A stretch of DNA of 64,000 nt from Leidyana gryllorum EB-2025a (taxonomy: Eukaryota > Protista > Apicomplexa): contig JBLWGC010000104.1 in the NCBI GenBank assembly GCA_048772705.1, positions 372,001 through 436,000 of the forward strand, read 5' to 3'. A program made the position numbers and the translations under genes. Numbering within the stretch: the stretch's first letter is position 1; every line of letters begins with the position of its first letter. The notes under the pieces are model-generated. The model was not told the origin of the DNA, did not search any database, and saw only the letters and a program-made list of their open reading frames with translations. This document shows positions 4,485-33,886 of this stretch, piece after piece.

Positions 4485-4726
4485 ATTTTTTCTCAGATGA
4501 CTGTTCTAGTCATCTCGCCTGGACCAACTCTACCTGACCTCCCCTAGCAATTGACAATGATCTCTTCTTATTTACCGATGCATTTGTGAGTGATCAAAAC
4601 GGCTCCTCCACGACTTAACAGTCACAAAAACGTACCTTCCGTGGCTGAGCCCTCGACTATCCGACTATCCGCACGCGCTCCCATCACACACAGTGCGCTT
4701 GCTTGATTTTTGGTAGGTGTTTCAAG

Positions 4727-6424: not shown

Positions 6425-7717
6425 ATGGACGATAAGGCTCACACCGATGACATGGGTCGGGCGGCGGTGGCTTCCGACTTAGAGTTTGGGGAGATTGGAG
6501 TGCAAAGCGGCAAGCCGAGAGGATGGCTCGTCGCAGGGATGGCTGCTGCCAGCCTCGTAGCGGGCGTCGGGAGCGCCTTAGCGGTAAAGATGCAAAATCG
6601 AGTCAAGACTGCCATCTGCCAGGATTGCATCACAGAAGATGAAATGGAGTATTTTGATCAGCCGTATTGGCAGACCTTCATCATGTTTTGTGGCGAAGCT
6701 TTGTGTCTGGTGGTGTGGGGTATCGAGATCTGGTGGAGAGATCGTCAAGGACGTCGCTTGATGTATATGGAATTCCCTAACAATGAAACCTCATTCAATA
6801 AGCCCAGAACGCCATATTGGTGGTGGATTTTTCCCGCTCTGGCCGATCTCATGTCAACAAGTTTCCTCAATATGGCGCTGACCATGACATATGCCTCAAC
6901 CATCTTAGTTTTGAATAACACTAACTTAATCTTAACGGGAATACTGGCTGTTGTTATGATACGCACCCCTCTGAGGGTTCACCAATGGCTCGGAATATGT
7001 GTCATCACTGCTGCCATGGGCGTGACCAGCATCCGCGCCATACGATCCCCTGAAAGTCAGACCAACACGGACCCCGACAAAGCGTGGTTGGGCATCATTC
7101 TGACCATATTGGGTGCTGGTATTGGAGCCGTTCAAGTTGTGCTAGAGGAGTGGTACTATAAGCGACGATACTTCCCTCCCATGGCTTCAATGGGCCTCCA
7201 AGGCCTTTTCGGGGCTGCGATGTCAATCGTGGCGATGCTTCTGTCGCATTATACGGGTGTGTACGACTTCCGCGTTGGCTGGTACCAAATGAATTCTTCG
7301 AAAGCTATCATGAGTGGGAACATATCCCACATTTTCTCTTCACTGATCTGCAATGGAAGTGGCCTTTGCACCACCAAGCTGGGATCGGCACTCTTGCGAG
7401 CCGCCGTGTGGGCACTTCGCAGTCCCGTTGTGTGGGTTGTGGAGCTTACCCTCGGATGGCAAAGCTACGCGTGGGAGCAACTGGTTGCTTTAATACTTGC
7501 CGGGGTGGGATTTTCCATCTATGTCTGTCTACTTCCGCTCTCGCAAGACAAAACTCCAACCATATATCGATGGATGAAACGCCAAGTGCCATGCTTCTGC
7601 ATAAGACCTTCAGACGTCGAAGAGACTCACTTCGACGAACCCTCAAAGATGATAGCTCACACTGAGCCAACCATCGGCTCTGACGCCGACACCGACGAGA
7701 AGTCCAATGCGATCTGA
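6425..7717 (+). CDS. SLC35F6-like transporter, paralog 3
   Basis: Same motifs as paralog 1; first ATG at 6425. Confidence 0.85.
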   Translation: MDDKAHTDDMGRAAVASDLEFGEIGVQSGKPRGWLVAGMAAASLVAGVGSALAVKMQNRVKTAICQDCITEDEMEYFDQPYWQTFIMFCGEALCLVVWGIEIWWRDRQGRRLMYMEFPNNETSFNKPRTPYWWWIFPALADLMSTSFLNMALTMTYASTILVLNNTNLILTGILAVVMIRTPLRVHQWLGICVITAAMGVTSIRAIRSPESQTNTDPDKAWLGIILTILGAGIGAVQVVLEEWYYKRRYFPPMASMGLQGLFGAAMSIVAMLLSHYTGVYDFRVGWYQMNSSKAIMSGNISHIFSSLICNGSGLCTTKLGSALLRAAVWALRSPVVWVVELTLGWQSYAWEQLVALILAGVGFSIYVCLLPLSQDKTPTIYRWMKRQVPCFCIRPSDVEETHFDEPSKMIAHTEPTIGSDADTDEKSNAI

Positions 7718-8016
7718 AACACCGATTCGACTTAACTCTACGCCGCACACGTGTGCTAACAACAAGATCAAGACGTGTGCTAGCTAATAGTGTATGCAAT
7801 GACAGCAGTAGACAGATGCTGATCGATTTATACAGATCTCCCTCCTTTTTTGGTTGAAACACCGAATCGTACAGTCTTGCAGAGCCAATGCAGTTGAGTG
7901 TCTGGCAGTTAGTGGGCCTGCCTGCTGCCCAGCACCCCTTCCACGCTTTCCATATGGGTAGAGCATAATTTTTCGTTCAAGGGAGCAAAGCGAAAGACTC
8001 GGAAGTGCCATCCGTG

Positions 8017-9297
8017 ATGGAAGATCTAGAAGGTGACAAGGCACGGATTGCGCAAGGTGCAAAGACTGCCCATTTATCAGATGAGGATATTCAGCAGCGT
8101 ATTGCGGGCAGCGAGTCGAATACGTTGAGTCTGGTACCTCCGCGGCGGTGGTTCATAACTGCGGCGTCTTTGACAACATTGATTGCCGGCTGCATGTGTG
8201 TGTTGGCCGTAAAGTACCAAAATCGAACGAAATATCCAGTTTGTGATGGATGTCCGGCGGAGTATTTCGATCAGCCGTACTGGCAAACGTTCATAATGTT
8301 TGCTGGAGAAGCGATGTGTTTGATTGTATGGTGGATCGAGATCAAATTACGTGATCGGGCTGGACGGAAGCTCATGTATATGGAGTTCCCTCGGAGCAGT
8401 CGATCGTTCAATAAGCCGCGTACCCCGTATTGGTGGTGGATCATGCCAGCTTTTCTGGATTTGATTGGCACTGCATTCGTCAATATGGCTTTCACAATGT
8501 CTTATGCGTCGACAATCCAGATGTTGCGAAACACAATGCTGATTTGTACATCCTTCTTCTCTGTTACGATGTTGCGGAGGCCATTGCGGGTCCACGAATG
8601 GATTGGTATAGTGGTGATGACGATTGGTATGGCGGTGGCGAGCATACAAGCCATTCGGTATCCGGAAAGTGCGACAAATTTGCACCGAGATCGTGCTTGG
8701 CTGGGGATTGTACTAACATTGGTCGGGACTGTATTCAACGCTTTTCATCTGATTCTTGAGGAATGGTATTACCACCGAGCGTATTTTCCTCCCATGGCGT
8801 CGATGGGACTGCAGGGACTTTTTGGTCTTGGCATGAATATAATTGCTATCATAATAGCGCATGCTGCGGACATCAGTAACTTCAAGCACGGATGGTACCA
8901 AATGAACCATTCGCGTGATATTTTCCTTGGTAATATATGGTATCTTGCTGTCGTGTGTATATTTAACGGCGCTGCAATTTGTACCACTAAACTGGGGTCC
9001 GGACTGCTGCGAGCTGTAATATACTCTCTCCGGTCGCCTCTGCTTTGGATCGTCGAACTCTGTCTCGACTGGCAGGACTTTTCGTGGGAGCAACTAATCG
9101 CCCTCTTCCTGGCGGCCTTCGGATTTCTGATTTACGCCTTTATTATACCCACAGTGTCGAAAACGGACACCCCAACAGCATACCGAAGGTTGAAGCATCA
9201 AATCCCATGTTGCTGCACTGACCCTATACCCGATTCTGACGATGAAGAGCTCTTCTCCGACACCAATAGTTTTCGAGACGACGCAGCACAATTGTGA
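8017..9297 (+). CDS. SLC35F6-like transporter, paralog 4
   Basis: Same motifs, and retains the family-typical ASTIQMLR; first ATG at 8017. Confidence 0.85.
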   Translation: MEDLEGDKARIAQGAKTAHLSDEDIQQRIAGSESNTLSLVPPRRWFITAASLTTLIAGCMCVLAVKYQNRTKYPVCDGCPAEYFDQPYWQTFIMFAGEAMCLIVWWIEIKLRDRAGRKLMYMEFPRSSRSFNKPRTPYWWWIMPAFLDLIGTAFVNMAFTMSYASTIQMLRNTMLICTSFFSVTMLRRPLRVHEWIGIVVMTIGMAVASIQAIRYPESATNLHRDRAWLGIVLTLVGTVFNAFHLILEEWYYHRAYFPPMASMGLQGLFGLGMNIIAIIIAHAADISNFKHGWYQMNHSRDIFLGNIWYLAVVCIFNGAAICTTKLGSGLLRAVIYSLRSPLLWIVELCLDWQDFSWEQLIALFLAAFGFLIYAFIIPTVSKTDTPTAYRRLKHQIPCCCTDPIPDSDDEELFSDTNSFRDDAAQL

Positions 9298-12975: not shown

Positions 12976-13800
12976 ATGCGTCTTTCTGTCCTCCTTATCG
13001 CTGCCGCTATCGGCGTTGCCTCTGCTGAGCTCGAGCCCAAGTCTCAGGTCGCCACCTGTGTCACTGTGGACAGCGGTGACGACGATGAGGGTGAAGAAGA
13101 CCGACGTATGGCTGAAGGAGATGAGAAGCCCGATTGCTGTCCCAAGGACGAGTGCAAGTCTCCCATGGACAACGAGGACGACATCGAGGCCTGTCTCGCC
13201 GCCATCCCTCCTGAGTGCCACTTGAAGATTGAGGAGACCTACGAAATCCAGGACGAGGAGGACTCCTTCTGCCAGTCTGACGACACTCTTATGATGAAGA
13301 ACCCCTTCGCTGGTGAGGACATGGAGGTCAGCAGCATCGTCATCGAGGATGTTTTGGAGGAGGGCTGTGATCCCGATAAGATGCACGGCGAAGTCAAGAG
13401 CGACCTCTCCATCGACACGGAGCAGTGTGAGGCCCCTGAAGATCTCGCCGATAAGGCCCCTGAGGGTGTTGAAGCTGAGGGCAAGAACCTTGTCGTCAAG
13501 CCCGATACCCTTAAGGGTGCTGAGGAGGGTCTGGTCATCAGCTTCGCTGAGCCCGCGACTCCCGGCGCCGACAGACGTCTCCAGGAGGGCGGCTGCAAGC
13601 TCGGTGACGCCAAGGTCGTCATCACCACCGTCACTGAGAAGCCCGGTGTCTTGGGCGAGTCCTCTACCGAAGCCTCTGACGAGGAGACCACCAAGCCCGG
13701 CGAAACTACCAAGCCCGGCGAAACTACCACCAAGAAGAGCGGTGTTGCTCCCCTGGTTGCCCTTTCTGGCGCTGCTGTCCTCACCACTATGCTTCTGTAG
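12976..13800 (+). CDS. Secreted acidic Cys-containing surface protein, likely GPI-anchored
   Basis: N-terminal signal peptide, Thr-rich stalk (ETTKPG repeats) and a C-terminal small-residue plus hydrophobic tail (SGVAPLVALSGAAVLTTMLL). Strong C/G-ending codon bias. Confidence 0.8.
   Translation: MRLSVLLIAAAIGVASAELEPKSQVATCVTVDSGDDDEGEEDRRMAEGDEKPDCCPKDECKSPMDNEDDIEACLAAIPPECHLKIEETYEIQDEEDSFCQSDDTLMMKNPFAGEDMEVSSIVIEDVLEEGCDPDKMHGEVKSDLSIDTEQCEAPEDLADKAPEGVEAEGKNLVVKPDTLKGAEEGLVISFAEPATPGADRRLQEGGCKLGDAKVVITTVTEKPGVLGESSTEASDEETTKPGETTKPGETTTKKSGVAPLVALSGAAVLTTMLL
13690..13725 (+). repeat. 18-bp tandem repeat x2 (ACCAAGCCCGGCGAAACT) encoding TKPGET
   Basis: Direct inspection. Confidence 0.85.
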
Positions 13801-16083: not shown

Positions 16084-17562
16084 ATGACGACGGAAATCCC
16101 AGCTTCACCCACTGTGACCGATCACGACCCTGACTTCTCACCTAATGCTCAGTCAGCAGCACCTCTCCTCCGGCTCGATAGCGCTGCTGGAAGTCGATCC
16201 ACGGGAAGCGACATGTCCCCTGCACACGCCATCCGGACTCCGGGCAACAAATACACCCTTGGAGTACACTCGGAATATGGAAAACTCAATGCGGTCATCA
16301 TCTGCAAACCAGGATTGGCCCATGCCCGCCTGACCCCCGCTAATTGCGATCATTTTTTGTTCGATGAGCTATTGTGGGTCGAGCGCGCTGAACAAGATCA
16401 TGCTTACTTTGTTGCGCAAATCGCCAAAAGAGGTGTTGAGGTATTCGAGTTCCAGGATCTATTAGCCGAGACATTTTCACACGCCCCCGAGGCTGTTGAC
16501 TGGATCCTTCACAGACGTTTACGAAAGAACCATAATTCTACAGAACTCGTTGAGGTGAGCCCCGAGACGCACGCGCACACACATGTGTGGTTTGCAAGTT
16601 TGTGTGCCTCACCGACTACTGTATTCTTGTAGGGACTTGATAGGTGGTTACGCCGCAGAAGTCCCCAGGAACTTGCTGAACGTTTAATTGGTGGAATCGT
16701 CAAGTTCGAAGTAGATGGTGACGAGGACTTCGGTCCTTTGACTTCAGGCTTCAGCGACAACGCATTCTACCTGGATCCGCTGCCCAATACGATATTTCAA
16801 CGTGACAGTTCCGCCTGGTTATATGACGGAGTTGTCTTGAACAAGATGTTTGCACCCACTAGACGCCAAGAGTCGGCTATGTTGGAGTGCATTTACAGGT
16901 TTCATCCGATGTTTGCTGGCCGAGTCGGCTTTTGGTGGGGCGACAAGCCCGAAGATCAAGAAGATCCGTCAACAACATTCGAAGGCGGAGACATCATGCC
17001 TGCTGGAAACGGAGTAGTTCTGATAGGTCTATCTCAGCGCACGACTCGGAGCGCTGTATGCGAGTTGGCCCCACGCATCCTAGGAAAAGCAGGAGGAGCC
17101 CAGCGAATTGTGGGGTGTCATATGCCCAGGGGAAGGGCAATCATGCATTTAGACACCGTCTTCACATTCATCGACCGCGATTTGGTCACATTTTACCCGG
17201 AGGTCATTGACAAGATAAAGTGCGAATCATTCACGCTGGACAGCGAGACCGGGGAAATTCGGACAGAGATGCACTCCGAGCATATGCTGGACGTTGTTCG
17301 GGAAGTGTTGAACTGTCCCGAACTGAAAGGCGTACCCACCGGAGGCAATGTGTTTGAACGGGAGCGCGAGCAGTGGGATGACGCGAACAATGTGTTCGTC
17401 TTATCTCCTAGAGTGGTCGTGGCTTATGACCGGAATGTCAAGACCAATGCCGCGTTGCGAGCACATGGTGTGGAGGTGATTGAGATTCCAGGCTCGGAGC
17501 TTGGCCGAGGACGTGGCGGTGCGCACTGTATGACTTGCCCAATAAGTAGGGACCCCGCGTAG
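16084..17562 (+). CDS. arcA: Arginine deiminase, 2 exons (intron 16555-16631)
   Basis: [48 protein letters not shown] and [23 protein letters not shown]...TTGTAG intron joins the two ORFs in frame. Confidence 0.95.
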
Positions 17563-17822: not shown

Positions 17823-18758
17823 TCAACTCACCAACCATAGTGTGGGGCACATTTTCCGCACCGTTTCTACCATCTGATCATCAGAGTGCTCCAATGAGGC
17901 GAGAAGACTCAGACCGCCTGTCAAAGTTCGGGAGAAGAAGAGATCGGGAAATGATTGGAAAAGAAAGTCCACCATGGTATATTGATTGGCAGCAACCGCG
18001 TAGTGGACAACCGAGGAGCCTCCAAAGTCCAGGCATTGCCGGAGCGGGATTGTGTAGGTGGCACGGTGTAATGCCTTGAACACATGTAGGAACCCCAATT
18101 GAGCAGCGAGATGGATCGGCATAGTGCCTGCAGAGAAGCTTTGTCCGGTCGCCAGGGCGGGAAAGTTAGTCAACAACCACTCCACAACGTCGACATTGCC
18201 CGATGTGACAGCAGCGTGAAGCACATTGAGTCCATCAAAGTCAGTTCGCTCGAAGAGAGTGGTCCTTCCCATAGTCGCGAGTGCCCGGAGCACCTCTAAA
18301 TGCCCTGCTGCAGCAGCTATATGTGGGAGGGTAACACCTCCGTTTGTTCGGCTGACGAGAAGTTGAAGGTCCGCTTTGAGCAGACTCGTGACCATCTCGG
18401 TTCGGCCATCACGTACTGCGTAGCCAATGGCCGACATTCCCTCAATGTCTGTCTCATAGAGCAAAGTGCGTCCGCCCTTTTTCAGAACCCATTCCAGGAC
18501 GGCGACCTTTCCACTCTCCACGGCAGCGTGTAAAGGAGTGGATCCGTCATCGGCCGATATCGTCATCAACACGGGGTATTCTTCGCACAAAACCTCAACC
18601 ACCGATAGAGCTCCGGCTTTGAGGGCTGTGCATAGCACAGTCTCGCCAGTCTCAGAGTGTACAATCAGATTGTTGCTTTCGCTCAGGACGGGCCGCAGGG
18701 CGGCAACATTATCGTTCTCTGCGGCCAGTTGTAAGGAGCATTTGGGCTTTGTGAGCAA
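17823..18758 (-). CDS. Ankyrin-repeat protein (start uncertain)
   Basis: About 8 repeats of the GxTPLHxAA..G type. There is no in-frame ATG at the ORF start, so an upstream exon is probable. Confidence 0.8.
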   Translation of the reverse strand: MLTKPKCSLQLAAENDNVAALRPVLSESNNLIVHSETGETVLCTALKAGALSVVEVLCEEYPVLMTISADDGSTPLHAAVESGKVAVLEWVLKKGGRTLLYETDIEGMSAIGYAVRDGRTEMVTSLLKADLQLLVSRTNGGVTLPHIAAAAGHLEVLRALATMGRTTLFERTDFDGLNVLHAAVTSGNVDVVEWLLTNFPALATGQSFSAGTMPIHLAAQLGFLHVFKALHRATYTIPLRQCLDFGGSSVVHYAVAANQYTMVDFLFQSFPDLFFSRTLTGGLSLLASLEHSDDQMVETVRKMCPTLWLVS

Positions 18759-18947: not shown

Positions 18948-19856
18948 ATGATTCACGTACTCGATGGTCCCCTACTGACGTCGGAGGCACAATCCTCAAC
19001 AGAGACTCTGGAGACGTCGCTGCCAACACCTCCACCTCCACCGGTCCAGCATTGTTTGGAGACACCACGGGTCGATGGGTGTGGTACATCTGGAGTACAG
19101 AGGTGTACTGCCGTGTTGTTCCCTTCGGACAGCGTTTTCGTGGACGCCATAATCGCTGATGATGTCATGCAGATGGGCGATCTATTCCACAGATGTCGAG
19201 AGAAGGGCCGGTGTCCGGCGGAAGCATTCCACCCCATGCATCTGGCAGCTCAGCATGGAGCTCTCAAGTCGCTGATGCAGTTAGTTTGTTGGGGACTCGA
19301 CCCAGTCTACAGTTTGAACGAGCGGGGATACACACCTCTAATGGAAGCCGTGGCTCACGGGCGAGTGGAGTGTGTGAGATTCTTGTGTCAGCATTACGGA
19401 GAAGGAGCCATCAGCGTGGTGGAGCGTGATGGGTTCTGTGCACTTGGGATCGCTGCTCAAACAGGTCACATTGATTGTTTCAGACTGCTGATCCAACACG
19501 GTGCCGATCCTCTGCTGACACGTGACAAGACGGGAAGCTCAGTTTTTGTCATGGCGGCAGCAGCCAATCAAACTTCTATCCTCAAATATATTCATCAGTC
19601 TCATCCCGAGGTGGAGTGGCTGAGAACAGATGACAATCTCTCGGCATTGGAGGTGGCCATAGTGAATCGGTCTCATGATGCCGTGGCGCTGTTGGGCGAC
19701 TGGCAATCGAAAAAATCAATGGCCATGGGATCTCCGATTCTGTGGGTGGAGAGACGCCTATTAGCATTTTTGTATCTATGGTGGTGGACTCTCCTAATGC
19801 AACCTCTGTCGCGGTGTTTGTCTCGGTTGAATAGTAACCATCACATCTCTCGCTAA
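18948..19856 (+). CDS. Ankyrin-repeat protein with hydrophobic C-terminal segment
   Basis: HPMHLAAQHG, GYTPLMEAVAHG and ALGIAAQTGH repeats; LLAFLYLWWWTLLM tail. Confidence 0.85.
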   Translation: MIHVLDGPLLTSEAQSSTETLETSLPTPPPPPVQHCLETPRVDGCGTSGVQRCTAVLFPSDSVFVDAIIADDVMQMGDLFHRCREKGRCPAEAFHPMHLAAQHGALKSLMQLVCWGLDPVYSLNERGYTPLMEAVAHGRVECVRFLCQHYGEGAISVVERDGFCALGIAAQTGHIDCFRLLIQHGADPLLTRDKTGSSVFVMAAAANQTSILKYIHQSHPEVEWLRTDDNLSALEVAIVNRSHDAVALLGDWQSKKSMAMGSPILWVERRLLAFLYLWWWTLLMQPLSRCLSRLNSNHHISR

Positions 19857-19914: not shown

Positions 19915-21441
19915 TCATGGGGCGATCTTCGCCCACGAGACTTGGGCTACTGCGAGGCTCGATATGAGAGTAAAATCTAATTGGTGATGTCCCTGTCCTT
20001 CAACGTTGTATATGGCCGACAGGACTGTCTTGGTGCTGCCGTCTTGGATGGTCATCGTTTGGATGCCACACTTGACAAACGTCCCGAATGATCTGCCAAT
20101 CGGTACCATGAGTGTGTGTGCAGCTTCGATCGCGTTGAGTGAATTCTGTTGATCTGTGGTGGAGCGATTTGGGGCGCTTATGAAATCCGTGTCGCAAATG
20201 AAAGTCCAGGAATGGGTCGGTCTCTTGTGGGGCGTGATCGGCGAGAAAGAGTAGCTTTCGACATTTATGCTCTCCCCGCAGCTGATACGCAGTACATCAT
20301 GCGATGTCTTGGACTCACACACCACATAGTATGTCATACTGCGTCCCTGGTGTATGCTGAGAGAGCATTTCTGCGATCGACTGTGATGAGTGCGTGTGGG
20401 CTTGTGTCTGCGAAGCCACCTGTCGAGTTTGGGTGTCCAAAATTCCTTTTGCTCGGCGCTCGCCTGCTCCAGTGCCTGGGCTATGACGCTTTGCGCTCGT
20501 TTGCTATCCTCCTTGGACGACCTCTTTGGCAGTCTCCTGACCGAGGGACACGGGAGGTTGACGTCTGGGAGTTCCAGGTTGCCGAGAACAATCTGCTCTT
20601 CTGTGGACGGGGCCTCAACGTGCTGACGGCGCTCAGCTAATGCGATAGCCTTTCTCGCCTTTGTCACTTGATACAACGACACCTGTATCACCTTGGAGAC
20701 ACTATCGATCACAACCCGGAGCTCGTGATTCGTATTGTACCGAGCGGCGACGGTGTACTCATTTCGTCTAACGGAGTGATATGTGTGGCAAAGATCCAAT
20801 TGGCTTCGGTGCTGCACAGCTATCGATTGCATTCCGCCGACTTCTCTGAGGATCGGAAGAGCCCCGACAACGATGTTGGCTCTCAAATGATTATCGTTGA
20901 TGTCAATCTCATCTTTGATGACGTATTTTTTGGTCCGAAGGAGGCGCAGGTCATCCTCATCTGAGATCTTCTGAACGGGAATCTGTTCCAATTGATCACT
21001 CCCTTTGTCCATCCATACTATGCCTATCAGTTTGTCGCCCTCAAAGCTCTCTGCAAAAAGTCGTTTGCCCTCAACCCGGAAGAATTGTGTCATCCACCGC
21101 CCCACTCGGTGTTCCCTCTCCGGCAATATGCTTTTGTCCCAACCCTCCAAGCGCTCTCTCCACCAGCATTTGATCTTCTCGTCCTGTTGATTCTCTATCG
21201 TTCGGATGTACTTCCGTCGACTGCCTAGCGTTATGCCTCGGGAGACGGGTACGAGACTGAAGTCTGGGAGGCTGCGCCAGATTCGATTGAGAGCGACCGC
21301 ATTGGAGATGCATTCTCGCGATGCAACCAGCGCTGCCATCTCCCGTCCACTCAAAGGACAGAGCAACGGGTGAAAGAGACTTCGAGAAGGGCATATGGGG
21401 CCCCTCCGCTGTTTGAGCACACGAGAGACTCTCTCTGTCAT
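19915..21441 (-). CDS. Orphan protein with 2 copies of an unrecognised repeated domain (array gene A)
   Basis: 508-aa intronless ORF whose two halves share a W..L..W helix followed by beta-strand patterns. Confidence 0.7.
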   Translation of the reverse strand: MTERVSRVLKQRRGPICPSRSLFHPLLCPLSGREMAALVASRECISNAVALNRIWRSLPDFSLVPVSRGITLGSRRKYIRTIENQQDEKIKCWWRERLEGWDKSILPEREHRVGRWMTQFFRVEGKRLFAESFEGDKLIGIVWMDKGSDQLEQIPVQKISDEDDLRLLRTKKYVIKDEIDINDNHLRANIVVGALPILREVGGMQSIAVQHRSQLDLCHTYHSVRRNEYTVAARYNTNHELRVVIDSVSKVIQVSLYQVTKARKAIALAERRQHVEAPSTEEQIVLGNLELPDVNLPCPSVRRLPKRSSKEDSKRAQSVIAQALEQASAEQKEFWTPKLDRWLRRHKPTRTHHSRSQKCSLSIHQGRSMTYYVVCESKTSHDVLRISCGESINVESYSFSPITPHKRPTHSWTFICDTDFISAPNRSTTDQQNSLNAIEAAHTLMVPIGRSFGTFVKCGIQTMTIQDGSTKTVLSAIYNVEGQGHHQLDFTLISSLAVAQVSWAKIAP

Positions 21442-21759
21442 ACCATCGACCTGCCAACTAAAAACCGATGTTGGTCAAAATTTTTCGGTACTCGACGCCG
21501 CACCGCCGATGATGGCTGTGTGACCGAAATCTGACGTTCTGCGGGCGCAGTTCTTATCAATTGCTACCGGCTGGATGCAATTCAACAGCTGACTGATCTA
21601 TTGTTCGCTGATCTGTCGTTCAGGTTGATGGATCTAATTCTCCTCGTGGCCAACAACAGTGATGAAAGTTTACTGTACACTGAACATAAAGGGGATTCTC
21701 TCGTCTGTCCACTTTGCTGCTTGCGTGTGTTCGTGCGTGTCCTCACAGTGGAGTTTCCT

Positions 21760-24700
21760 TCAGCCCTCCAAGTCAACTACTGACTTGACACGAATTCTAA
21801 TTGACCCACTCGAGCCAACAACTTCGAGCAAAAATTTGTTGTGGCCAGGCTTCTGGAAGATGTGTTGGTAACGAATTTCGCCGTTAGCCAGTCTCTGGAA
21901 CAGGGGTGCGATATCCGTGCTAGTGGGAAACCCTTCCAGTCGCTCTATACATCTGTGCGCGACAGCCAGAACTCCTTCTGACGTCTGGAACTGTGGCGCG
22001 ACCTCCTCAATCTTTCGCTCGTACAGATACTCAACATCCTCTGGAGCGTCCGTGTCGAGCATCAAAAGCGATGGCTCCACAACAAATTCCGCGCACATCA
22101 GTTTTGAGACCACCAGAAGTCGTTCGCCTCTTTCGTCCGTCCGCTTGAACAGGAACAATTTCTTATCGGGCACCAGTAGTGTGGGTGTACAGTAAAGAAC
22201 GGTGGCACGACGGTTGAGTTGTGCCTGTTGTTTGCCCTCACGGTTGGTCTGTGACTGTTTGCACTGACGGTTCATCTGCCGTATCCATTCGCTTCCTTCG
22301 TCGGGCTTCTGCTCCCTCCTCCAGTAATGGATGATTTTGTCCCAGTCTTCTGGCAGTGGCCGATGACAGAGTGTGGTTTCAAAGTGTGTAAGTTTCCATT
22401 CTGCTTCACTCGCCGTGACAACGTCCAACAAATCCTTCCATCCCTCTTTTGTCGGCATTGCCTCCCATGAAAGTTCAGGATTGGACGAACGGAGGGCAGA
22501 GAAACGTCTATCCACTTGAAATGGAGAAACTGGTGCAGAGGATTCTCCGTCTAAAGTATCTGGTGATGACGCCTCTGCCTTCGATTGCGAGCGATAGACA
22601 ACGGAGGTTGACTCGTGGGCACAGTCAGTTGTGTCGACCGGGTACAGATAAGGCGAGACTGCTTCTGCCGAGTCGGCACCCGCGGTGGGTGGTGAGTCAC
22701 CCGGTTGCCATTTGATCCCGACGGTTCCCCCCGTCTCCAGGAAGGCGATAATGTCATAACTCTCATGGTCCTGCCCCACTGCTCCTGTCGGGAACGACAA
22801 TGCATTCACTTCCCCGTACACGCCCTTCAAGGACGATGCGAAAGTCATCAGGGTGTTCAACAAACTGCCCCTGTCGCCTTGGTCTCCTTCAACATGGAGA
22901 GGGAGGGTTTTGTGTTGAAGCACCGACTCGTGGTCGAGCGGTACTACTGGAACCGCGCGAACCTCGCCTTGTGCAGAAGTCCCCGCAACCTCACAGATAA
23001 CCCCGTCTTGTATCCGAAAGGTCCAATAATCGGTTTCTTGAGATGCGCCAATGCTCTTTGTTACCCAATAATGCTCGACTTCAGCCCCATCGTCCTCCCA
23101 AACGACATGCCGAACATTCCCGGGACCATATCTCTGGTCAAGACGCCTTCTGAGTTCCTCCTCATTCACCAAGTCCGCACCGTCCATTAGGACAGCATAC
23201 GTCCGCTTGCCGGTGGAAGAGGTCTTCTCGTCACTTGGAGGGCTATCGACTCGTGTCTCGTTTGTCATCGCTATTCCTTGAGATATCGTCGAAAGTCTGG
23301 ACCTTCGATCGCCAACGCTAAAAGATTGAGAGATTCTAAATGTCAGCGGACGCTCAAGGGACTTTCTGGGCCTCCGCGTAACGAGACGAGGCGAAGACAA
23401 AAGTAAAGACCTCCTGAAGCCAATTGTATCGTGAAGAGGCTTTGGAGAAGCGCTTGGGGACGTCATCGCCATACCTTCGCAAATTACTCCCCACTGCTCT
23501 TGCGTCCACCATTCCACCAAGCTGGGGTCATTATGTTGGGTTACCTCGGGGGGTGCGACCCACCAGTGCTTCAAAGCCCGATCATCCGACTCATTTGACG
23601 ATGACACCATAAAAGTAACGCGATCCCCCGGGTTTTTCCGGAACACATGGCATCCTTTGCTGGACATTCTGATAATGAGCGGAGTCGCTGGATCACTTCC
23701 TGGAGGAGGAATGTATCGGAGCCAACGTGCCTTATCCCCGCCTTCTTTGTGGAACGTAATGCAACCGTCAGTCTGTGGGCCGTCCGTCTGTTGGGCGTCA
23801 GTCTGTTGGGCCTCAGTCTGTTGGGCGTCCGTCTGTTGAACGTCAATCTGTGGGCCGTCCGTCTGTGGGCCGTCCGTCTGTTGGGCGTCAGTCTGTGGGC
23901 CGTCCGTCTGTTGAACGTCAATCTGTGGGCCGTCCGTCTGTTGGGCGTCAGTCTGTGGGCCGTCCGTCTGTTGGGTGTCTGTCATTCTATCGAGTATATT
24001 CTTGATCGATGAGAGGTCCCGAAAGTCTTCCGAAGTCTCTCCATCCCCCAACACTCGGAGCTGTTTGGCCACAGCCAAGCGTGCGAACTGGTCATTGGAA
24101 AGATTTTCGTAATTGACAAAGGACTGCAACTTGACACCGCTGTTTTCGCACACAGTGGCCGCTAAGACATGGTCACGATCGACGGACAGCACAAGATTAC
24201 AGTCATCGCCAGCAATTTCTCTGCTGAAATCGATTTTGTGACTTCTAGTGGAATTGCCGTCTCTTGGTGACAAGTGCCGCAATATAGCCCCCAACAACGG
24301 CTCCCACCACACCGGTTGAGTCTTGGACCAGCACCCTTGGTACGGAACGATCTTCACCGACTCCTCGATCAAACTCGCAGGCACAACAGTGTGGTCCACC
24401 TTCAAGAGGACCATCTTTGAGTTCTTGACATCGAACCACAGTATATCACACTGACCCCCCTCGTTTCTGGTGGCCATCAACTCCTTTGTCTCTCGACACC
24501 ACCGGAAATGGGGCTCTTCAGTTTTCTTCTTGGGGGATCTGGGGAGCGGACTCGACCGCTTATCGAGTGCATCAATCCATTTCGCTCCTATGGGGTCCAG
24601 GCCGTGAGTCTGGAAATGGCTCTGCAAGGCATTGCGGAGATAACTCCTGCGTGTCCAATTTTCGAAAGACACTCCCCGCAAACCTTCTACTTCATCTGAT

Positions 24701-24852
24701 TGTTGAGTGTTGGGTGGCAACGGGGCGTCATCATCATTGCTGCCTCCCCCAAGCCCACACGAGCAGAGGGAGAGCAGTCCGCTCAACAACCCCGGGACTA
24801 AATGGGCATCGCTAACGTGAGGTGCTGCTGCGTGAAGGCGAATGTGCGTCAT
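21760..24852 (-). CDS. Orphan protein with ~4 copies of the same domain plus a pentapeptide repeat (array gene B)
   Basis: 1030-aa intronless ORF. Confidence 0.75.
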   Translation of the reverse strand: MTHIRLHAAAPHVSDAHLVPGLLSGLLSLCSCGLGGGSNDDDAPLPPNTQQSDEVEGLRGVSFENWTRRSYLRNALQSHFQTHGLDPIGAKWIDALDKRSSPLPRSPKKKTEEPHFRWCRETKELMATRNEGGQCDILWFDVKNSKMVLLKVDHTVVPASLIEESVKIVPYQGCWSKTQPVWWEPLLGAILRHLSPRDGNSTRSHKIDFSREIAGDDCNLVLSVDRDHVLAATVCENSGVKLQSFVNYENLSNDQFARLAVAKQLRVLGDGETSEDFRDLSSIKNILDRMTDTQQTDGPQTDAQQTDGPQIDVQQTDGPQTDAQQTDGPQTDGPQIDVQQTDAQQTEAQQTDAQQTDGPQTDGCITFHKEGGDKARWLRYIPPPGSDPATPLIIRMSSKGCHVFRKNPGDRVTFMVSSSNESDDRALKHWWVAPPEVTQHNDPSLVEWWTQEQWGVICEGMAMTSPSASPKPLHDTIGFRRSLLLSSPRLVTRRPRKSLERPLTFRISQSFSVGDRRSRLSTISQGIAMTNETRVDSPPSDEKTSSTGKRTYAVLMDGADLVNEEELRRRLDQRYGPGNVRHVVWEDDGAEVEHYWVTKSIGASQETDYWTFRIQDGVICEVAGTSAQGEVRAVPVVPLDHESVLQHKTLPLHVEGDQGDRGSLLNTLMTFASSLKGVYGEVNALSFPTGAVGQDHESYDIIAFLETGGTVGIKWQPGDSPPTAGADSAEAVSPYLYPVDTTDCAHESTSVVYRSQSKAEASSPDTLDGESSAPVSPFQVDRRFSALRSSNPELSWEAMPTKEGWKDLLDVVTASEAEWKLTHFETTLCHRPLPEDWDKIIHYWRREQKPDEGSEWIRQMNRQCKQSQTNREGKQQAQLNRRATVLYCTPTLLVPDKKLFLFKRTDERGERLLVVSKLMCAEFVVEPSLLMLDTDAPEDVEYLYERKIEEVAPQFQTSEGVLAVAHRCIERLEGFPTSTDIAPLFQRLANGEIRYQHIFQKPGHNKFLLEVVGSSGSIRIRVKSVVDLEG
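23766..23980 (-). repeat. 15-bp minisatellite (~14 units) encoding QTDGP/QTDAQ/QIDVQ pentapeptides
   Basis: Variants of GTCTGTGGGCCGTCC and GTCTGTTGGGCGTCA in tandem on the plus strand. Confidence 0.95.
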
Positions 24853-24983
24853 TGAAGTTGAGGATCTGGCGACAAAAGCGACTTGGCCTCACTCTGCAAA
24901 AAAAAAACTACTACCGTTATGGACTATCGCATTTGTACCTGCCTGAAGGCTCTATGTCGAGTCGACGAAGACGACAACGATCG

Positions 24984-27900
24984 TCACTCCTTGAGCAACT
25001 GGACTGAGAATTTGTCTTCGCACAGTCCGTACAGGACGCGGATGGAATATCCTTGATTAAACCGCACGGTGTAAACGGCCTGATCTACATCATGCCTCAT
25101 TTGTAAAGTGTGTCCCACTGGTTTACCCAACCAGACCAGAACGCTATCGATCAGAGGTGTTGCGGCTTCGATGGCAATTTCGGGGTATTGTATTGTAGTA
25201 ACCGCCTCTTGTCTGCCCGAAAGTGGAACCGGGATGTCCAACAACACCTTGCCGACCGCATACTCGGGGTCACATAATTTCATCTGTGTGGTGCTATTCT
25301 GTTGCAACCGCAGTATGCGAGGTATCTTCGACTCATCACCGTCTGTCGGGAGATATGTCAGAAACTCCGAGCCTCCCTGTGTTCGAAGGGCTCGAAAGCA
25401 AAATCCCGGATCGACGCCTTGTTCCGTCTTTTCTGCCCACTCTTTGAGTACATCCGCCCACCACTCCAGTTGAACCACCGGCTGACATTGGCTTTGATAA
25501 GTCGAAAGCAGCGCTGCATTGCATTCTCGGGATTGCAATCTCGGTCGCTGCCAGGGCTTATGTGCTCTGGCTCGCAGTGCCCCACATATGTTTCGAGTTT
25601 TGTAGTCATTCGGTGACACTCGAGTCTTCTTGAGCGTAACAAACCTGTCTACCGATATTGTGGCCGACTCAGCGTCGGTGTTGATACCGAAAACACTCGT
25701 CTCTGGTCCCTCGTCACCATCTGCTTCGACGCAGACTGCCAAACTGTACTTTTCTCCACCCCTCTCAATTGCAACATCCAAAGCCACCCAAGCTATCCTT
25801 TCGATTGAGTTGTCAAGACTCGAGAGAATGCTGAGAGCCTTTGAGTCGGTAGATCTGTTCATCCGATCCACTGATTGATTGAGTTTGTATTCTTGGTGGA
25901 AACTCGTGTCCAGAACCCACACCCCTACGGGGCCTGGAAGATGGTGTCGCGCCCCCAAGACTTCAAACCGCGTCTCCAACACCGGGAAGGCGGTAAACTT
26001 ATTCTCCTTACGATTAAATTGCCATATGTACCGCAACTCTCCATTCTCATGTGTCTCCCCCCACACGTCGCTTTTGCCATCATCAGACGACTTGAAGAAT
26101 TTACTCTTGAAACCGGCTGCGGTAAATGATTTCTTCGGAAGGAAAGATTGACCCCAGCCCGCGAGGAAAGGTGGCACAGGCGCAGAATCCGGTAGCGTTG
26201 CACTGCCGGCCAATCGCATTGCGGTCGCCCGAGCCTTACGGGGAACAGTGACTCTCTTGAAAAACTTGGGCGCCTTGAGAAGTGTGTTGAAAATGGGCTT
26301 CACTGACTCGGGAGTTGGAGGACCGCTCATTCCGTCCAGAGAAGTGTAGCTGGAAGGCCGTGATCCCTTTGGTGAGCCTTGACGCCCTCTCAGATATGGG
26401 GGGACGGGTGCCTCATCGGATGAACGGTTTCCTCCTCGCGAAAAGGGTTTCTTAGGGGTCAGAGGACTTGTGTCTCCGACTGCGTTGCACAAACTAACCT
26501 CCAATTTCCGATCCCGAAGGTGGAAATGGAGCTGGTAGGGCTGTTGGTGTTTCGAGAAATGGTGTACGAAAGCTACACTCTCATTGTCGTCCGGCGAATA
26601 TGCCATGTGAGACTTCACCGATACACCTCCTGAGTGTTCCATTTGTCTCACGTATGTGTCCACCACTCTCAGAAAAGTGTCCAGCGTGACGGTAAGGTGA
26701 CTCGGGAGCTCAATTGTGTTTGTGCAAAAGGGGCTTTCCGCCTTCTCGAGAATGCGCACATCGATATCCCTCGCAAGGCCCTCGCACGGGATGTAGAGTA
26801 CTCGAGAGACTCGACCATCGTTGTTCGGCAGAGCATAGGTGACATACAGAGCTTTGCCCTCAGTCTGGAGGAACTTGAGCTCATATGTCCCGCTCTGGAA
26901 GTGTGCTTGCTGCTGCTCTTCGCTTGCGTTCATCCAAGGCACCAAAACCAACTGCCACCATTCCATTGCTTCACGCCACTTCCATGGCTGATCGACTGGA
27001 AGTGCTCCAGGCGTCCAAAGCTCAGCCTTCTCCTCGTTCTCGTTCTCGATGACTCCCCCAATCTCATCTTTACTCGCCACGGAGTCGCTCTCTTTTGAAA
27101 TCGCGCTACTCTTGCCGCCGGTGGAGGAAAGGTCGTTCCCGGACTCCTCCACACTGAATGCCTTCAGCTCCAAGATTTTGGGAACTTCAGTCAGTCTGAT
27201 GTTTAGCGCTTCTGAGATTCGGTCCCGGGCAGACACGGCTGATTGAGTTGTTGGCTGAAGGAGGCCGGCGAAGAGTGAGTTTGGGCTCGGGATTTGGAAG
27301 TTTGCTGTGCGCTGGCCAGCTGGCAGCCCATCCACTTCACTAGTCTTATCGACCACCTCTTGGATTGTCGGCAGTGTAAGTTTGAGCGGTTGGCGGTGTG
27401 ATTTTGGACCACGTCGTCTTGATGGGGTGACAACGCTCCGCGTGGGCGGCGGTGGAGCAGGCCGCTTAACGTTGACTGGCCGGGTGGGTTGTTTCACACT
27501 GTCCTTCACGGCCTCAGGAGTAGTCTTCTGCTGGGGGGCCCGCTTCTCTGACGCTCGGGGAACACTCTGTTGCGTCACCACTGTTTCAGCCGCTTTCTCA
27601 GCGATCTGTTGCGGTTTGGGAACAGTCTGTTGAGTCACCGCTGTCTCAGTCGGCTTGGGAACAGTCTGGTGGATTGCCGCCTGCTTAGCCGTGCTGAGGG
27701 GGGCCGCCCGGCTGGTGAGCTGAGGAGAGCCGTGGCCACCCAACGCTTCGACGACAGGTTTGGAGGGAGGGGCAGGGCTACTCGGTGTGGTACCAGATCG
27801 CTGAGCTGCCGCCTGCTCCCGACTACTCCATGCAGATAGTGCAAGTTTGACAGTATTGGAAGTATCACACGAGGGTTTACGAGAAGCCCACGTGGATTCC

Positions 27901-28661
27901 TCAAATTTAATGGTTGCCGAGGGGGCAGTCCCATTCACTTTGACACTCGGGGTCGGACTGGGCGGCTGTTTGTTATTGACATTGGCTCCCAAGACTTGAG
28001 CTCTCTGTTTAGGTGGCAATGGGGCTGGAGACTTCTTATGGTGTTGTGGGGCAGAGACTTTGGCTGCTTGAGTAGCGGCAACGGTTCTCAACGGCTGCTT
28101 AGATTGCTGAGCATTGAGCGGTTTGGCAGTCGTGACTGTTGGTGGTGAGTTAGCCTGATGCAAAACTTTCGAGGGCTTCGAGTTCACTAATAAACCTCTG
28201 GGTGTGGTGGCACTTGGTTGCATCCTGGCTGTGATCTTGATATTGGTTGGTGGGGAGGATGGAGGAGGAGGTATTTGGGTTCCAGCAGCCGGTGGGGCAT
28301 TAGGAGTGCGAAGAGAGGTTAGTTTGTTGAGCTTGGAGCCCGGTTTTGACTGGTGACTCTGTCCAGGTGATACCTGTCTCGATTGTGGTTGTATTGGTTT
28401 CTTGTTGTGTATCTCGATTCGAGGCTGTGCTCCGGACGTGACTCGGTTCTCGACGGCTTGACCGGATTGGAGTGCTTCCAATTGACGGCGTATGGCGCTC
28501 ACTGATGTCACTGTTTGCCCTCCAGAAGCCTCAGACCCCCCACGAGCTTCAACCATATTTGGGAGAACATGTTGCTTCAACTCGGTTGCAAACACACCGA
28601 GAAGGGCTCCACGGTAGACTCTGGTGTCGCTGGCTTGATTCTCAATTCGTACTAATGTCAT
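24984..28661 (-). CDS. Orphan protein: long P/Q/T/K-rich disordered N-terminus plus ~3 copies of the repeated domain (array gene C)
   Basis: 1225-aa intronless ORF. Confidence 0.75.
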   Translation of the reverse strand: MTLVRIENQASDTRVYRGALLGVFATELKQHVLPNMVEARGGSEASGGQTVTSVSAIRRQLEALQSGQAVENRVTSGAQPRIEIHNKKPIQPQSRQVSPGQSHQSKPGSKLNKLTSLRTPNAPPAAGTQIPPPPSSPPTNIKITARMQPSATTPRGLLVNSKPSKVLHQANSPPTVTTAKPLNAQQSKQPLRTVAATQAAKVSAPQHHKKSPAPLPPKQRAQVLGANVNNKQPPSPTPSVKVNGTAPSATIKFEESTWASRKPSCDTSNTVKLALSAWSSREQAAAQRSGTTPSSPAPPSKPVVEALGGHGSPQLTSRAAPLSTAKQAAIHQTVPKPTETAVTQQTVPKPQQIAEKAAETVVTQQSVPRASEKRAPQQKTTPEAVKDSVKQPTRPVNVKRPAPPPPTRSVVTPSRRRGPKSHRQPLKLTLPTIQEVVDKTSEVDGLPAGQRTANFQIPSPNSLFAGLLQPTTQSAVSARDRISEALNIRLTEVPKILELKAFSVEESGNDLSSTGGKSSAISKESDSVASKDEIGGVIENENEEKAELWTPGALPVDQPWKWREAMEWWQLVLVPWMNASEEQQQAHFQSGTYELKFLQTEGKALYVTYALPNNDGRVSRVLYIPCEGLARDIDVRILEKAESPFCTNTIELPSHLTVTLDTFLRVVDTYVRQMEHSGGVSVKSHMAYSPDDNESVAFVHHFSKHQQPYQLHFHLRDRKLEVSLCNAVGDTSPLTPKKPFSRGGNRSSDEAPVPPYLRGRQGSPKGSRPSSYTSLDGMSGPPTPESVKPIFNTLLKAPKFFKRVTVPRKARATAMRLAGSATLPDSAPVPPFLAGWGQSFLPKKSFTAAGFKSKFFKSSDDGKSDVWGETHENGELRYIWQFNRKENKFTAFPVLETRFEVLGARHHLPGPVGVWVLDTSFHQEYKLNQSVDRMNRSTDSKALSILSSLDNSIERIAWVALDVAIERGGEKYSLAVCVEADGDEGPETSVFGINTDAESATISVDRFVTLKKTRVSPNDYKTRNICGALRARAHKPWQRPRLQSRECNAALLSTYQSQCQPVVQLEWWADVLKEWAEKTEQGVDPGFCFRALRTQGGSEFLTYLPTDGDESKIPRILRLQQNSTTQMKLCDPEYAVGKVLLDIPVPLSGRQEAVTTIQYPEIAIEAATPLIDSVLVWLGKPVGHTLQMRHDVDQAVYTVRFNQGYSIRVLYGLCEDKFSVQLLKE

Positions 28662-28990
28662 TGTGTCGAAATTTTGTTTAAGTTAGGTATGAAGTGGTCG
28701 ACTGGGTGGGTGGTGGTCAGTCTGTGATTGATTATCTGGCAATCACCATTGATAAAACTAACTAGTCCAACGTAAAACAGAGTGAGTAATAGAATAGCTA
28801 ACGCTAGCGATAAGCATAATTTGCAACTAAACGATTCATTCATGCGCTTAAGGGATCTGCTCACGAGTGGATCGTCCAGCATACGTTAATGGAGCGATTT
28901 CTCTTTTTTTATCTCCAACGATCCAATATCCGTGGCCTCTTGTGAGGGGTGTTCTGATGCCGTCTCCATAAATTTGACACCACAAATCTC

Positions 28991-31548
28991 TCAGAGTGAG
29001 GTGACCACACTGTCGTTGTGGAAAGAGCGGCTGATGTCCTCAAGCGGTGCCTCGCAGGCGCTATCGCGATCGGTGGTGGCGGAGCTCGCCGCACTAAAGG
29101 TGATTTCCACGCCAGGTTCGTTTACCTCACTACTGAGGACGGATTCCTGGTTGGACAATCGGTTCAACGCCTGGGAGCGACACCACACTTGAGACTCCAG
29201 GCAGGGATTAAGAGCTCCTCCATTCTGATCCAGCTCGGTTACCTCCTGAAGTTCCTGTTGTCCGTCGCTCCCAAAAAACTCCGCATCATTATCATTCTCG
29301 AAACCTGTGAGCGCGTCGAACCACTCAGGCTCCTCACTTTGCAGCGATGAGTCGCTCGGCTGCGGAGCGCCCGGCCGAGAAGAGTTTGTGTCCGCAATGC
29401 TCGGGGGAAAACGCTTGCACAGCAGTGGGGCGAGGCGTCTGGCTTCGTGCACTGTCGCGATTTCGTCATCGGTTAGTCTGCGGCACTCTTGGAGGACAAA
29501 GATTTCTGCAGATGCCATGCGAGCTTTTGAGGGATCTTTGTTGAATGCGAGGCAAACGAGACTGCGCTTTTGTGTCTTGGCATTGTAAAAGTGCGCGACG
29601 ACGTCAAACTGTCTGAAATGCCCTTTCACAAGAACTTCTTGGTCGAGTGCACATCCTTCGAGACTCCCAAGAACACTACTCTTCGTGGCGAAGAGTCTCT
29701 GTATGCCGAGAAGACCGACAATGGTCGCGTTATCCTCAATCGTCTGCGAGAAGGGGTGCTCAGAATCACTGATACCATTTAGTTTGGCAAGAACTTTGTA
29801 CTTGCGCCTCTCGTCAGGCTTGATGAGTTTGATTTCGTTGCAATGCTGCTCACTTCGGCATTTGAGGGCAACTAATGTTCCGCGAGGGTCTTCCTGCACG
29901 GCCACAGCGTTACCAAACGAGACCGGATCGATAACAGTGGTGTAACTGAGCCAGCGACTCCCATCGGGGCGAGGCCAAACGCTGGGTTTCACCGGGCAGA
30001 GGGGCAGATGTTGGAGCCGGTGCAACATTGGGGTGATCTCCCGACTGAGCGGATATTGGAGCGAGTTCTCCACCATCAGCTTCATCACAGGCACTACTTC
30101 CGGCAGAATGAGGTCGAAGCTGGTTTCAGACACAGGCTTCGCCAAGGCAGTGTACCACTTATGTCGTTGTACACAAACCGGATGAGGGTGTTTGAGCCAG
30201 CCATCGGAGTCCATTTGTATTTGTACTTTGGTGCCTCTTCGACGTACTCGTTCTTGATGACTTGATGGACTGCTTCCAGGAAACGGACCCTTGAAGCCAT
30301 GTCCTTCTTTGGCTGTGAGGAGACTCTCACTCTAACAGTTTTGCGAATGTCCCAAACCAAGGCATCTGCATCCACCTCGGGTTTCTTAGAAAACTGGATG
30401 ATCCCCTCTGCTTTCGAAATCTTCCAAAACAGTCCAGGGAGCTCGACCCAGTGAGCCTTCCCGAAGGTGGCGTGAGCCCACTGCGGAAGGAAATGCGAGA
30501 GATCGGTGTAGGGAAACTTCTCGGGCTGCAAAGCCTCGACCTGGCCATTCAACTCGTGAATGCGACCGAGACGGAAGTAAGTTGTGTCTCCCTTTGTCCA
30601 CCACGCATCTCTTTGAAACGCTGATGTTGGGTCCCTCACAAAAACTGGTGGCAGCTTGGGAGCCGGGTCAGTTGAGCAGTCGGGGCAGCAACACGGGTTG
30701 GAAAGAAGCGAGTAAACAATCTCTTCCCCAACCTGTTTCGCGCAGATGAGGAAAGGCTCATCGCCACAAGTCGCCCCCATTGAGATGGGATGTGATCCTC
30801 CAATCGCAATATCCCACTTAATTGGGTGCCCATTGATTTTTGTGTTGAGACCCACCCACTCAAGGTGATCAACCAATCTCTCTTTGACACAGAATCGCAT
30901 CAAACAGGCAAACACAGATTGCCAATTCTTTCCCTTGGACGGAACGTGACGAATTCTCCCTTCTTTCGACCATTTCCCATTTTTCACAAGCATTGGGTTC
31001 ACCTTCGGTTCGCGAACCTCCAAATCACACACCTTTCTCGCACCGCTGTCCCACCACATCAATCGACGAGGTGCAGGTCTCTTGCCTCCACGCGGTTCGG
31101 CCCGGAGCTGCAACAGCATCTCTTTGGAAGAAGATCGGTACATTTTGGCTTCCAAGCCCTGAAACAGGCGTCTTTTGCCACCAAATAATCTGGAATTGAA
31201 CCAATCCCCCAATACCCCCTTCCAGATCGAGACTGATTCGCTGTCCAACTCTCTCTCGATCGCACTCTGCAGCAATTTCTTCGACTTCCTCTCCAAGCTT
31301 CCTGACTCCAGTTTTGGACACCCATACAACTCCAAACCCTCAGGTCGCGACGCGAGTCCCGCTATCACGTTTGTGACAATCTTTCCCATCAGGGGAACCA
31401 GTGATGAAGGCGGAGACGCCTCTCTGCGAGTCTCCTGATTCGAACGAACGCAACTTGACACCATCTTAGTGTGTGGGGGGTAGGTTTTTTTTTGCCACTG
31501 TCTGCCGGTCGACAGTGGGCAGTGAACTTCAGCAGTCCTCAAGGGCAC
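28991..31548 (-). CDS. Orphan protein with ~3 copies of the repeated domain (array gene D). Two overlapping ORFs joined by a possible intron 30120-30172 or a frameshift; first ATG at 31464
   Basis: ORFs 30094-31548 and 28991-30214 overlap in different frames. Removing GTACAA...ACCAG (53 nt) fuses them in frame. Confidence 0.6.
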
Positions 31549-31948: not shown

Positions 31949-33886
31949 ATGGAGACAGGTTTGGAGTCATTAACTTCCGCTCTGGTGAGCGCGGTGACTA
32001 ACGAAGATGTGACGATGCTGCATTGGATCCGAGACCATAGCGGAGGACGTATGCCGAGTTTGTTGGAGAAGCTTGTGGCCGACGGGTCGTCTTTATTCCA
32101 CATTGCCGCTTCTTGTGGGTCTGTGAGAGTGATGAATGTGTTGACTGATTGGGGATTACGGCCACACCTCCGCGACACTCGTGGATGGACAGTATTCATG
32201 AGTGCAGTTTACGAGGATCAGGTGGGATCAATGGAGTGGCTATACTCACGGTACCCCTCAGCGCTGCATGGTCGGGGTCGCAATGGGGTGACGGCATTAC
32301 ATTTGGCTGTCAAGAATGGATGTTTGCGAGCAACGAAGCGACTAATACAATGGGGACTGACGCCTGACAAAGTAGTGGACGAGTTTGGGGTCGATGCAAT
32401 GATGACGGCGGCAGCAGCAAACCAAGTGACGACAATGGCCTACTTATACGATCGGTGCCCTCGGATTCTGGAACTACGGACTCCGTCTCGCCGTTGTGCT
32501 CTACACTTCGCCGCATCCAATGGCTCCCGTGAAGCCTTGGAACTATTATTGGAATGGGGGATGGATCCAGCGACCAAAGCGGATGAGAATGGAGAGACAC
32601 CGTTGATGGTAGCGATTGCCAACAATCACTTGGAAGTGGTGGTGCGACTTTTTGAGCAGTATCCTGAGCTGTTCAAACAACGAGCTCGCGGCGGAAGGAC
32701 TGTTTACCATTACGCGGCTGAAGGCGGGGCCGTAGAAATCCTGGAACAATTAGATACTTGGGGACTGGACTACTTGAATACCGAAGACTGTGATCGCCAG
32801 ACCGGTTTCACAGTTGCAGCTGCTACTAACAGAGTTGAGGCGATGCGATGGTTCTACCGACAGCGCCCGTCCAGACTGCTGCACCGAACGGTATTTGGCC
32901 TAACGGCTTTGCACCTCGCGGCAGCGTCAGGTGCTCTACGAGCAATGGAACAATTGGTCGCCTGGGGTATGAGGCCGGACAGTACTTTGGATGACTGGGG
33001 TCATACTGCCTTGATGTTGGCTGCCTTGGGCGACCAACGCGAAGCGGCCACCTGGTTGAATGATAGGTGTGTGGCGTTGATAAATGTTAATCTAAAACCA
33101 GCATGGCATCTCCAACAAGAAGAATGTGTAAGACGCTTGTGGACAACGACTACCCTGACGGGAAGGTGCAAAGCATCGTCTCCGTCATCGGGTTTAGGCG
33201 CATGGCTGCTCGAGCCGTATCGAAAAGCGGCCACATTGATAGATCGATTGGATGTTGGTGACTTCTCTCCTCTTCATATAGCTGCCTTGGCTGGTTCCTT
33301 AAGCACCTTGAACCTGTTGATCAAATGGGGGTTGCATCCTAATGAAACCGTCACGCAAGACGGAGTGACGGTTCTCATGGTAGCGGGGGTGGCCAACGAA
33401 GTAGAAACCATGCAATGGTTACATCAATATTACCCACGGCTGATCCATCGACGGATGAAAGGCGGCTTGACTGCTCTCCATCTGGCTGCGGAACAGGGTG
33501 CACTGGACTCCGTCAAAGTGTTAGTCGGATGGGGACTAAGTCCCACCCATCTGGTTGACGAGGAGAAATTGAATCCTTTCATGCGGGCGGTGGCAGCCAA
33601 TCAAGTTGAGGTGATGCGATGGATTTTCGACTTGGATCCCCAAGCTCTACTTGAGAGAGACGCGGGAGCGGCGATGCATCTCGCGTGCCAAGCTGATGCT
33701 GACGAGGCTATTGCGATGCTCAATGCCTGGGAAACTCAACAACACAAGTGCGCTCACCCTCCTCCCGTTGCTCTGTCTCCCTACTCTGCTTCCAAGACTA
33801 TCAGTGCCTTATTTATGTTCAGTGGCGGTTTGGCTCTCGGTCTGGCCATGACTGCGCTCAGCAGGATTGCCTCCCATTTGTCATGA
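31949..33886 (+). CDS. Large ankyrin-repeat protein with C-terminal tail-anchor-like helix
   Basis: About 16 ANK repeats (TALHLAA..G); C-terminal ISALFMFSGGLALGLAMTAL. Confidence 0.92.
   Translation: METGLESLTSALVSAVTNEDVTMLHWIRDHSGGRMPSLLEKLVADGSSLFHIAASCGSVRVMNVLTDWGLRPHLRDTRGWTVFMSAVYEDQVGSMEWLYSRYPSALHGRGRNGVTALHLAVKNGCLRATKRLIQWGLTPDKVVDEFGVDAMMTAAAANQVTTMAYLYDRCPRILELRTPSRRCALHFAASNGSREALELLLEWGMDPATKADENGETPLMVAIANNHLEVVVRLFEQYPELFKQRARGGRTVYHYAAEGGAVEILEQLDTWGLDYLNTEDCDRQTGFTVAAATNRVEAMRWFYRQRPSRLLHRTVFGLTALHLAAASGALRAMEQLVAWGMRPDSTLDDWGHTALMLAALGDQREAATWLNDRCVALINVNLKPAWHLQQEECVRRLWTTTTLTGRCKASSPSSGLGAWLLEPYRKAATLIDRLDVGDFSPLHIAALAGSLSTLNLLIKWGLHPNETVTQDGVTVLMVAGVANEVETMQWLHQYYPRLIHRRMKGGLTALHLAAEQGALDSVKVLVGWGLSPTHLVDEEKLNPFMRAVAANQVEVMRWIFDLDPQALLERDAGAAMHLACQADADEAIAMLNAWETQQHKCAHPPPVALSPYSASKTISALFMFSGGLALGLAMTALSRIASHLS

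Follow-up and report, generated by a model that had tools for sequence, protein, structure and literature searches.

The window analysed here, a 64,000-nucleotide stretch of the Leidyana gryllorum EB-2025a genome (contig C104, positions 372001-436000; the assembly comprises 15.5 Mb in 237 contigs), carries an array of four co-oriented coding regions that share a repeated domain, firmly in two of them and probably in the other two. All coordinates of the array are those of the window, and all its features lie on the minus strand. Gene A (19915-21441) encodes 508 amino acids with two copies of the domain. Gene B (21760-24852) encodes 1030 amino acids with up to four globular blocks. Gene C (24984-28661) encodes 1225 amino acids, comprising a long disordered N-terminal part and up to three copies. 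Gene D (28991-31548) is split over two frames, D1 (30094-31548), defined by its open reading frame (ORF) and codon preference, and D2 (28991-30214), which encodes a globular block followed by an acidic tail.

The annotated frames were examined with a codon preference trained on neighbouring genes. In five of five ORFs the annotated frame was preferred over both other frames of the same strand; it also outscored the antisense frames, with one exception in A. The open frames of D1 and D2 overlap at 30094-30331, and near 30190-30140 the preference changes over from D1 to D2. Among the many GT-AG pairs that might span this junction none stands out, so that the switch may reflect a short intron, a genuine frameshift or an error of the assembly. 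The two parts of D were searched separately throughout and never joined. An internal methionine of D1 (residue 55, window 31384-31386) is followed by G, with T in position 6; should translation really begin there, this would match an N-myristoylation site, a speculative reading. Between C and B, a GT..AG intron-like segment read from the sequence (24937-24894) probably sits in the 5' untranslated region of B. An in-frame splice that would fuse C to B (GT at 24987, AG at 24866) was not accepted; such pairs are frequent by chance. Short GT-AG introns occur in the neighbouring genes. An earlier reading of the same DNA from its letters alone (the sequence-only reading) had called the four genes essentially intronless. 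The segment upstream of B and the frame switch in D qualify this.

Copies of the repeated domain

BLASTP comparison among the five ORFs gave a single match at E 0.001, between A and C. The amphipathic tryptophan helix described in the sequence-only reading is commoner than chance would give: the motif W-x3-[LIV]-x2-W occurs at six sites in 3654 amino acids (two in A, one in B, two in C and one in D1), against a mean of 0.31 in shuffled sequences, and six sites were reached in none of 5000 shuffles and in none of 1000 with 25 spacings allowed. Decoy ORFs contained it once in 16,302 amino acids. Those other motifs of that reading that were looked up were also present, including IEAA in both A and C; the longer AIEAA occupies the same alignment columns in the second copy of A and the third of C.

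Twelve candidate copies were cut by hand, with boundaries taken from the motifs of the sequence-only reading. Four are firm: A1 (20656-21180, amino acids 88-262), A2 (19918-20454, 330-508), C1 (26478-26975, 563-728) and C3 (24987-25478, 1062-1225), with A2 and C3, the two that contain AIEAA, each forming the C-terminal end of its protein. In pairwise shuffle tests z was about 7.7 for C1-C3, about 6 for A1-C1 and about 4 for A1-A2 and A2-C1. When each of the four was left out and scored against the other three, at most one of 500 shuffles matched its score, and each outscored 345 of 345 decoy windows. Three further copies are likely: B1 (24103-24594, 87-250), B4 (21763-22359, 832-1030, the C-terminal end of B) and D1a (30679-31239). 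Their first halves had mean z values of 1.15-1.68 compared with a decoy 99th percentile of 1.16, B4 lying at that line, and the first half of D1a reached z 3.8 against both C1 and C3. The strict tryptophan motif is present in B4 and in D1a and in each case opens a globular block. B2 (23443-24015, 280-470), B3 (22687-23211, 548-722) and D1b (30145-30636) are borderline, at the decoy 90-95th percentile or slightly above in the half-copy test; the meander of B2 gave z 3.2 against C3. C2 (25626-26114, 850-1012) lacks the tryptophan motif and is borderline in its second half only. The block of D2, D2a, gave no signal against decoys in the half-copy test, and its status as a copy is unsupported. In place of the 11-12 copies first proposed, a fair count from these comparisons would therefore be four firm, three likely, four borderline and one unsupported. 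Significant mutual similarity is confined to A1, A2, C1 and C3 and is partial in B1, B4 and D1a. The proposal of one domain repeated through four genes holds for A and C by shuffles and decoys, and is no more than likely for B and for D, the latter not being one clean ORF.

Several results weigh against extending the domain to B and D. With the core profile, hhalign gave only E 0.08-0.37 for B1, B4 and D1a and left them unlinked to the core. A blind six-frame search with a hidden Markov model (HMM) of the four firm copies placed no B or D segment above background, in a setting where HMMER penalises long targets. The similarity tests lean toward the hypothesis, because the hand-picked boundaries came from the motifs of the earlier reading and some decoys were non-coding frames. 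B and D might accordingly be unrelated orphans, or share only a convergent tryptophan-rich amphipathic helix, with the domain common to A and C alone. We regard this as unlikely; the strict motif, which heads a globular block in B and in D alike, speaks against it, as do the scores of the D1a first half and that of the B2 meander.

In a six-copy alignment, identities ranged from 10 to 23%, and only the tryptophan and leucine of the first helix were invariant. The alignment contained no invariant polar or metal-binding residue and no conserved lysine/arginine column. No similarity between copies was found at the DNA level, where repetition is confined to a minisatellite; the copies may therefore simply be old, where the sequence-only reading inferred rapid diversification, and judged by sequence the duplications could be either old or fast-evolving.

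Globular blocks alternate with low-complexity linkers, as had been proposed. The coding 15-bp minisatellite (23765-23983; about 14 units, a Q/T/D-rich pentapeptide repeat), previously assigned to the linkers, instead seems to lie inside a copy of B, interrupting B2. Gene C carries a basic P/S/T/Q-rich disordered region (27372-28484; about 370 residues, isoelectric point (pI) 11.6) that includes polyproline runs; over C as a whole, 17 PxxP motifs and two such runs were counted. In the basic linker of C (26163-26411), two occurrences of the short sequence APVPP-[YF]-L, spaced by 76 residues, may represent a linear binding motif. The modelled copies themselves are acidic (pI 5.8 for C1 and 5.0 for C3).

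Predicted fold and searches for relatives

Structure models of C3 and C1 showed the same order of elements, helix, meander, helix and meander; their input alignments share sequences, so the two models are not fully independent. This agrees with the layout proposed from the sequence, except in the closing meander, for which both models predict four strands rather than three. Foldseek searches of ESM Atlas, BFVD and PDB returned nothing at E 0.001 or a template-modelling (TM) score of 0.5. The fold is probably not new: judged from the models, the second half would resemble the common TBP-like/KA1 class, below significance. Most of its fold neighbours are binding modules, namely the KA1 domains of METTL16, SAD-B, MARK3, AMPK, TUT1 and Kcc4, the TBP-like domains of RnlA, the DcrB/SciW/EagT6 group, adaptin appendages and Mediator subunits. 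The RnlA domains recur in structure searches with both models; the match had E 0.012 but a TM score of 0.25 and a root-mean-square deviation (rmsd) of 19 over the whole. The two halves of the domain were not linked to each other by hhalign.

Searches of Pfam, PHROGs, NCBIfam, PADLOC and PDB sequences gave nothing significant for the array, in line with the proposal of a lineage-specific, highly diverged domain without a Pfam family, and no catalytic domain was found in A-D by the Pfam and NCBIfam searches. Word-based searches with residues 545-1225 of C and with the core alignment found nothing, a feature-based search of ESM Atlas had no match for C1, a metagenome scan with A had none, and Rfam gave no match. 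A handful of candidates were set aside. C1 had a ToxS row (E 0.005) that falls short of its cut-off. Among 1.84 billion representatives A matched only P0001, an ORF made of tandem repeats whose ten weak matches fall on the first 85 residues of A, outside the domain. Two matches of B (P0002 and P0003) cover 7% of the query each, and the P0003 alignments shown fall on the minisatellite peptide. Endonuclease-like rows for A in ESM Atlas (0.85) have only 86 of 256 features in common, which is chance level. Searches of the organism's own genome returned only the array itself, with a first filter too coarse for 20% identity; a weak D1 match on contig C204 (114752-118099) lies inside a gene that reads by eye as a multi-exon glycine decarboxylase (glycine cleavage P protein). 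Sequence searches are weak at 20% identity and word searches reach only proteins of similar length; the results therefore mean that no close relative was shown, and do not amount to absence.

The DNA pattern for WWxxxLxxW was not enriched genome-wide (49 sites compared with 57 for the control). Outside the window, at C104:781542 and 782016, two such sites lie on the minus strand in the same frame, 158 codons or about one domain length apart. The span 781542-782042 is a candidate second locus of the domain; about 0.005 such pairs would be expected by chance, with a distance range that was chosen after the pair had been seen.

A putative scaffold family and alternative readings

As a tentative best explanation, to which we give slightly less than even chances, A-D represent an undescribed repeated domain in intracellular, non-catalytic, multivalent scaffolds or adaptors. 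The genes would be old tandem paralogues that arose as one domain of about 165-180 amino acids duplicated repeatedly, a relationship shown for A and C and likely for B and D. Each domain is predicted, at low confidence, to consist of two helix-plus-antiparallel-meander units, at least the second of which resembles the TBP-like/KA1 class. The tryptophan/leucine/tryptophan face of the first helix would pack on the sheet and be kept for its role as the structural core, with divergence left to the surfaces. Without a catalytic role, the proteins would remain in the cytoplasm or nucleus; the open sheet of each domain would bind a peptide or protein partner, and the domains would be tethered and spaced by disordered linkers, proline-rich or acidic. 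By analogy with its fold neighbours, the domain is probably a binding platform inside the cell.

The fold neighbours also suggest a more specific activity, namely KA1-like binding of RNA, as in METTL16 and TUT1 with U6 snRNA, or of acidic membranes, as in the MARK/SAD kinases with acidic phospholipids. We consider this rather unlikely. It is weakened because, as judged from pI and alignment columns, the modelled C copies are acidic and no basic position is conserved, so that a basic patch like the one described in PMC7229813 is missing. Pfam gave no KA1 match, whether whole proteins or individual copies were searched. A KA1 core comprises two helices and five strands (PMC4454167), but the half matched to it here is modelled with a single helix, and in the terminal copies a strand comes last, with no closing helix.

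The surroundings of the array raise another alternative. Three ankyrin-repeat ORFs flank it, one at 17823-18758 on the minus strand, one at 18948-19856 on the plus strand and convergent with A, and one at 31949-33886 on the plus strand and divergent from D. Together with A-D as diversified sensors, they might form an island for recognition or defence inside the cell, directed for instance at viruses or hyperparasites. The clustering in tandem, the extreme divergence and the presence of ankyrin genes to the left and right would suit such an island, as would the recurrence of RnlA for both models and the fact that the right ankyrin gene finds its best genomic match in one of the left ones. We nevertheless hold it to be quite improbable, since the ankyrin genes are only 25-33% identical, little closer than an unlinked ankyrin gene that scores almost equally. 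In addition, no effector domain (HEPN, nucleoside triphosphatase, kinase or nuclease) was found, and the PADLOC rows were weak (E about 0.03).

Orphan status and a tandem arrangement are typical of parasite host-interaction families, and the sequence-only reading had offered a host-interaction role. That A-D are exported or surface-exposed factors is, in our estimate, very improbable: the current gene models, with uncertain 5' ends that leave this reading some room, contain no signal peptide by hydropathy, as that reading had also noted, and no transmembrane segment (maximal 19-residue hydropathy 1.15-1.62), and long basic disordered regions suit an intracellular protein better.

The boldest reading would take all 11-12 blocks as one new family at several loci here and in other gregarines, whose tandem two-platform domains form with the flanking ankyrin proteins a diversifying intracellular recognition system, an immune-like receptor repertoire in an apicomplexan. 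This we judge highly improbable.

Genomic context and comparison with known systems

Other genes of the window were noted in passing. On the plus strand at 3264-9297, four tandem ORFs share similar N-termini and a hydrophobic segment and have the look of an array of transporter-type paralogues. An intronless ORF at 12976-13800, with an N-terminal hydrophobic leader, an acidic cysteine-containing body and a hydrophobic C-terminus, looks like a glycosylphosphatidylinositol-anchored surface protein. An arginine deiminase (Pfam ADI, E 5.5e-94) lies at 16084-17562, apparently with an intron near 16555-16632. One gene of the window encodes a nucleosome assembly protein that matched PDB 5x7v, the Plasmodium falciparum protein, with E 9e-29, compared with 2e-15 for plant and human homologues, in agreement with an apicomplexan source. 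Elsewhere in the assembly, at C35:383853-385880, a long 21-bp-type repeat array is probably a mucin-like threonine-rich coding repeat on the opposite strand.

Gregarines branched off early within the Apicomplexa, and the proteins peculiar to their lineage have hardly been studied. The present domain, with at least four copies and probably seven or more, had no relative in the large collections of proteins that were searched; it represents unannotated protein space and can seed a new family profile.

The array resembles lineage-specific tandem orphan families of parasites in being made of clustered, co-oriented, intron-poor paralogues without detectable homologues; it differs from them in the lack of a secretion signal and in its layout of domains plus linkers, and the domain matches no described family. 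Yeast YER067W (PDB 3bcy) is a single-domain protein with rmsd 4.1 and 7% identity, under the trust level of the tool. Proteins of the Mog1/PsbP/DcrB fold, including the Eag chaperones SciW and EagT6, align over about half of a copy with less than 11% identity and an rmsd of about 4. The N-terminal tandem TBP-like domains (NTD and NRD) of the RnlA/LsoA toxins may recall the predicted two-unit domain, a likeness that is not significant; the array is eukaryotic and lacks their C-terminal HEPN, no HEPN or RnlA match being present in Pfam, NCBIfam or PADLOC. KA1 domains share 7-17% identity with the array domain in structural alignments, and, unlike the KA1 proteins, those of the array have no attached kinase or RNA-modifying enzyme and contain many copies each. 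The domain fails membership of both KA1 and RnlA and, by analogy, may act like their binding platforms. Should it turn out to stand alone as a tandem TBP-like/KA1-like module, it would widen a class of folds that is familiar chiefly from attachments to enzymes and large complexes.
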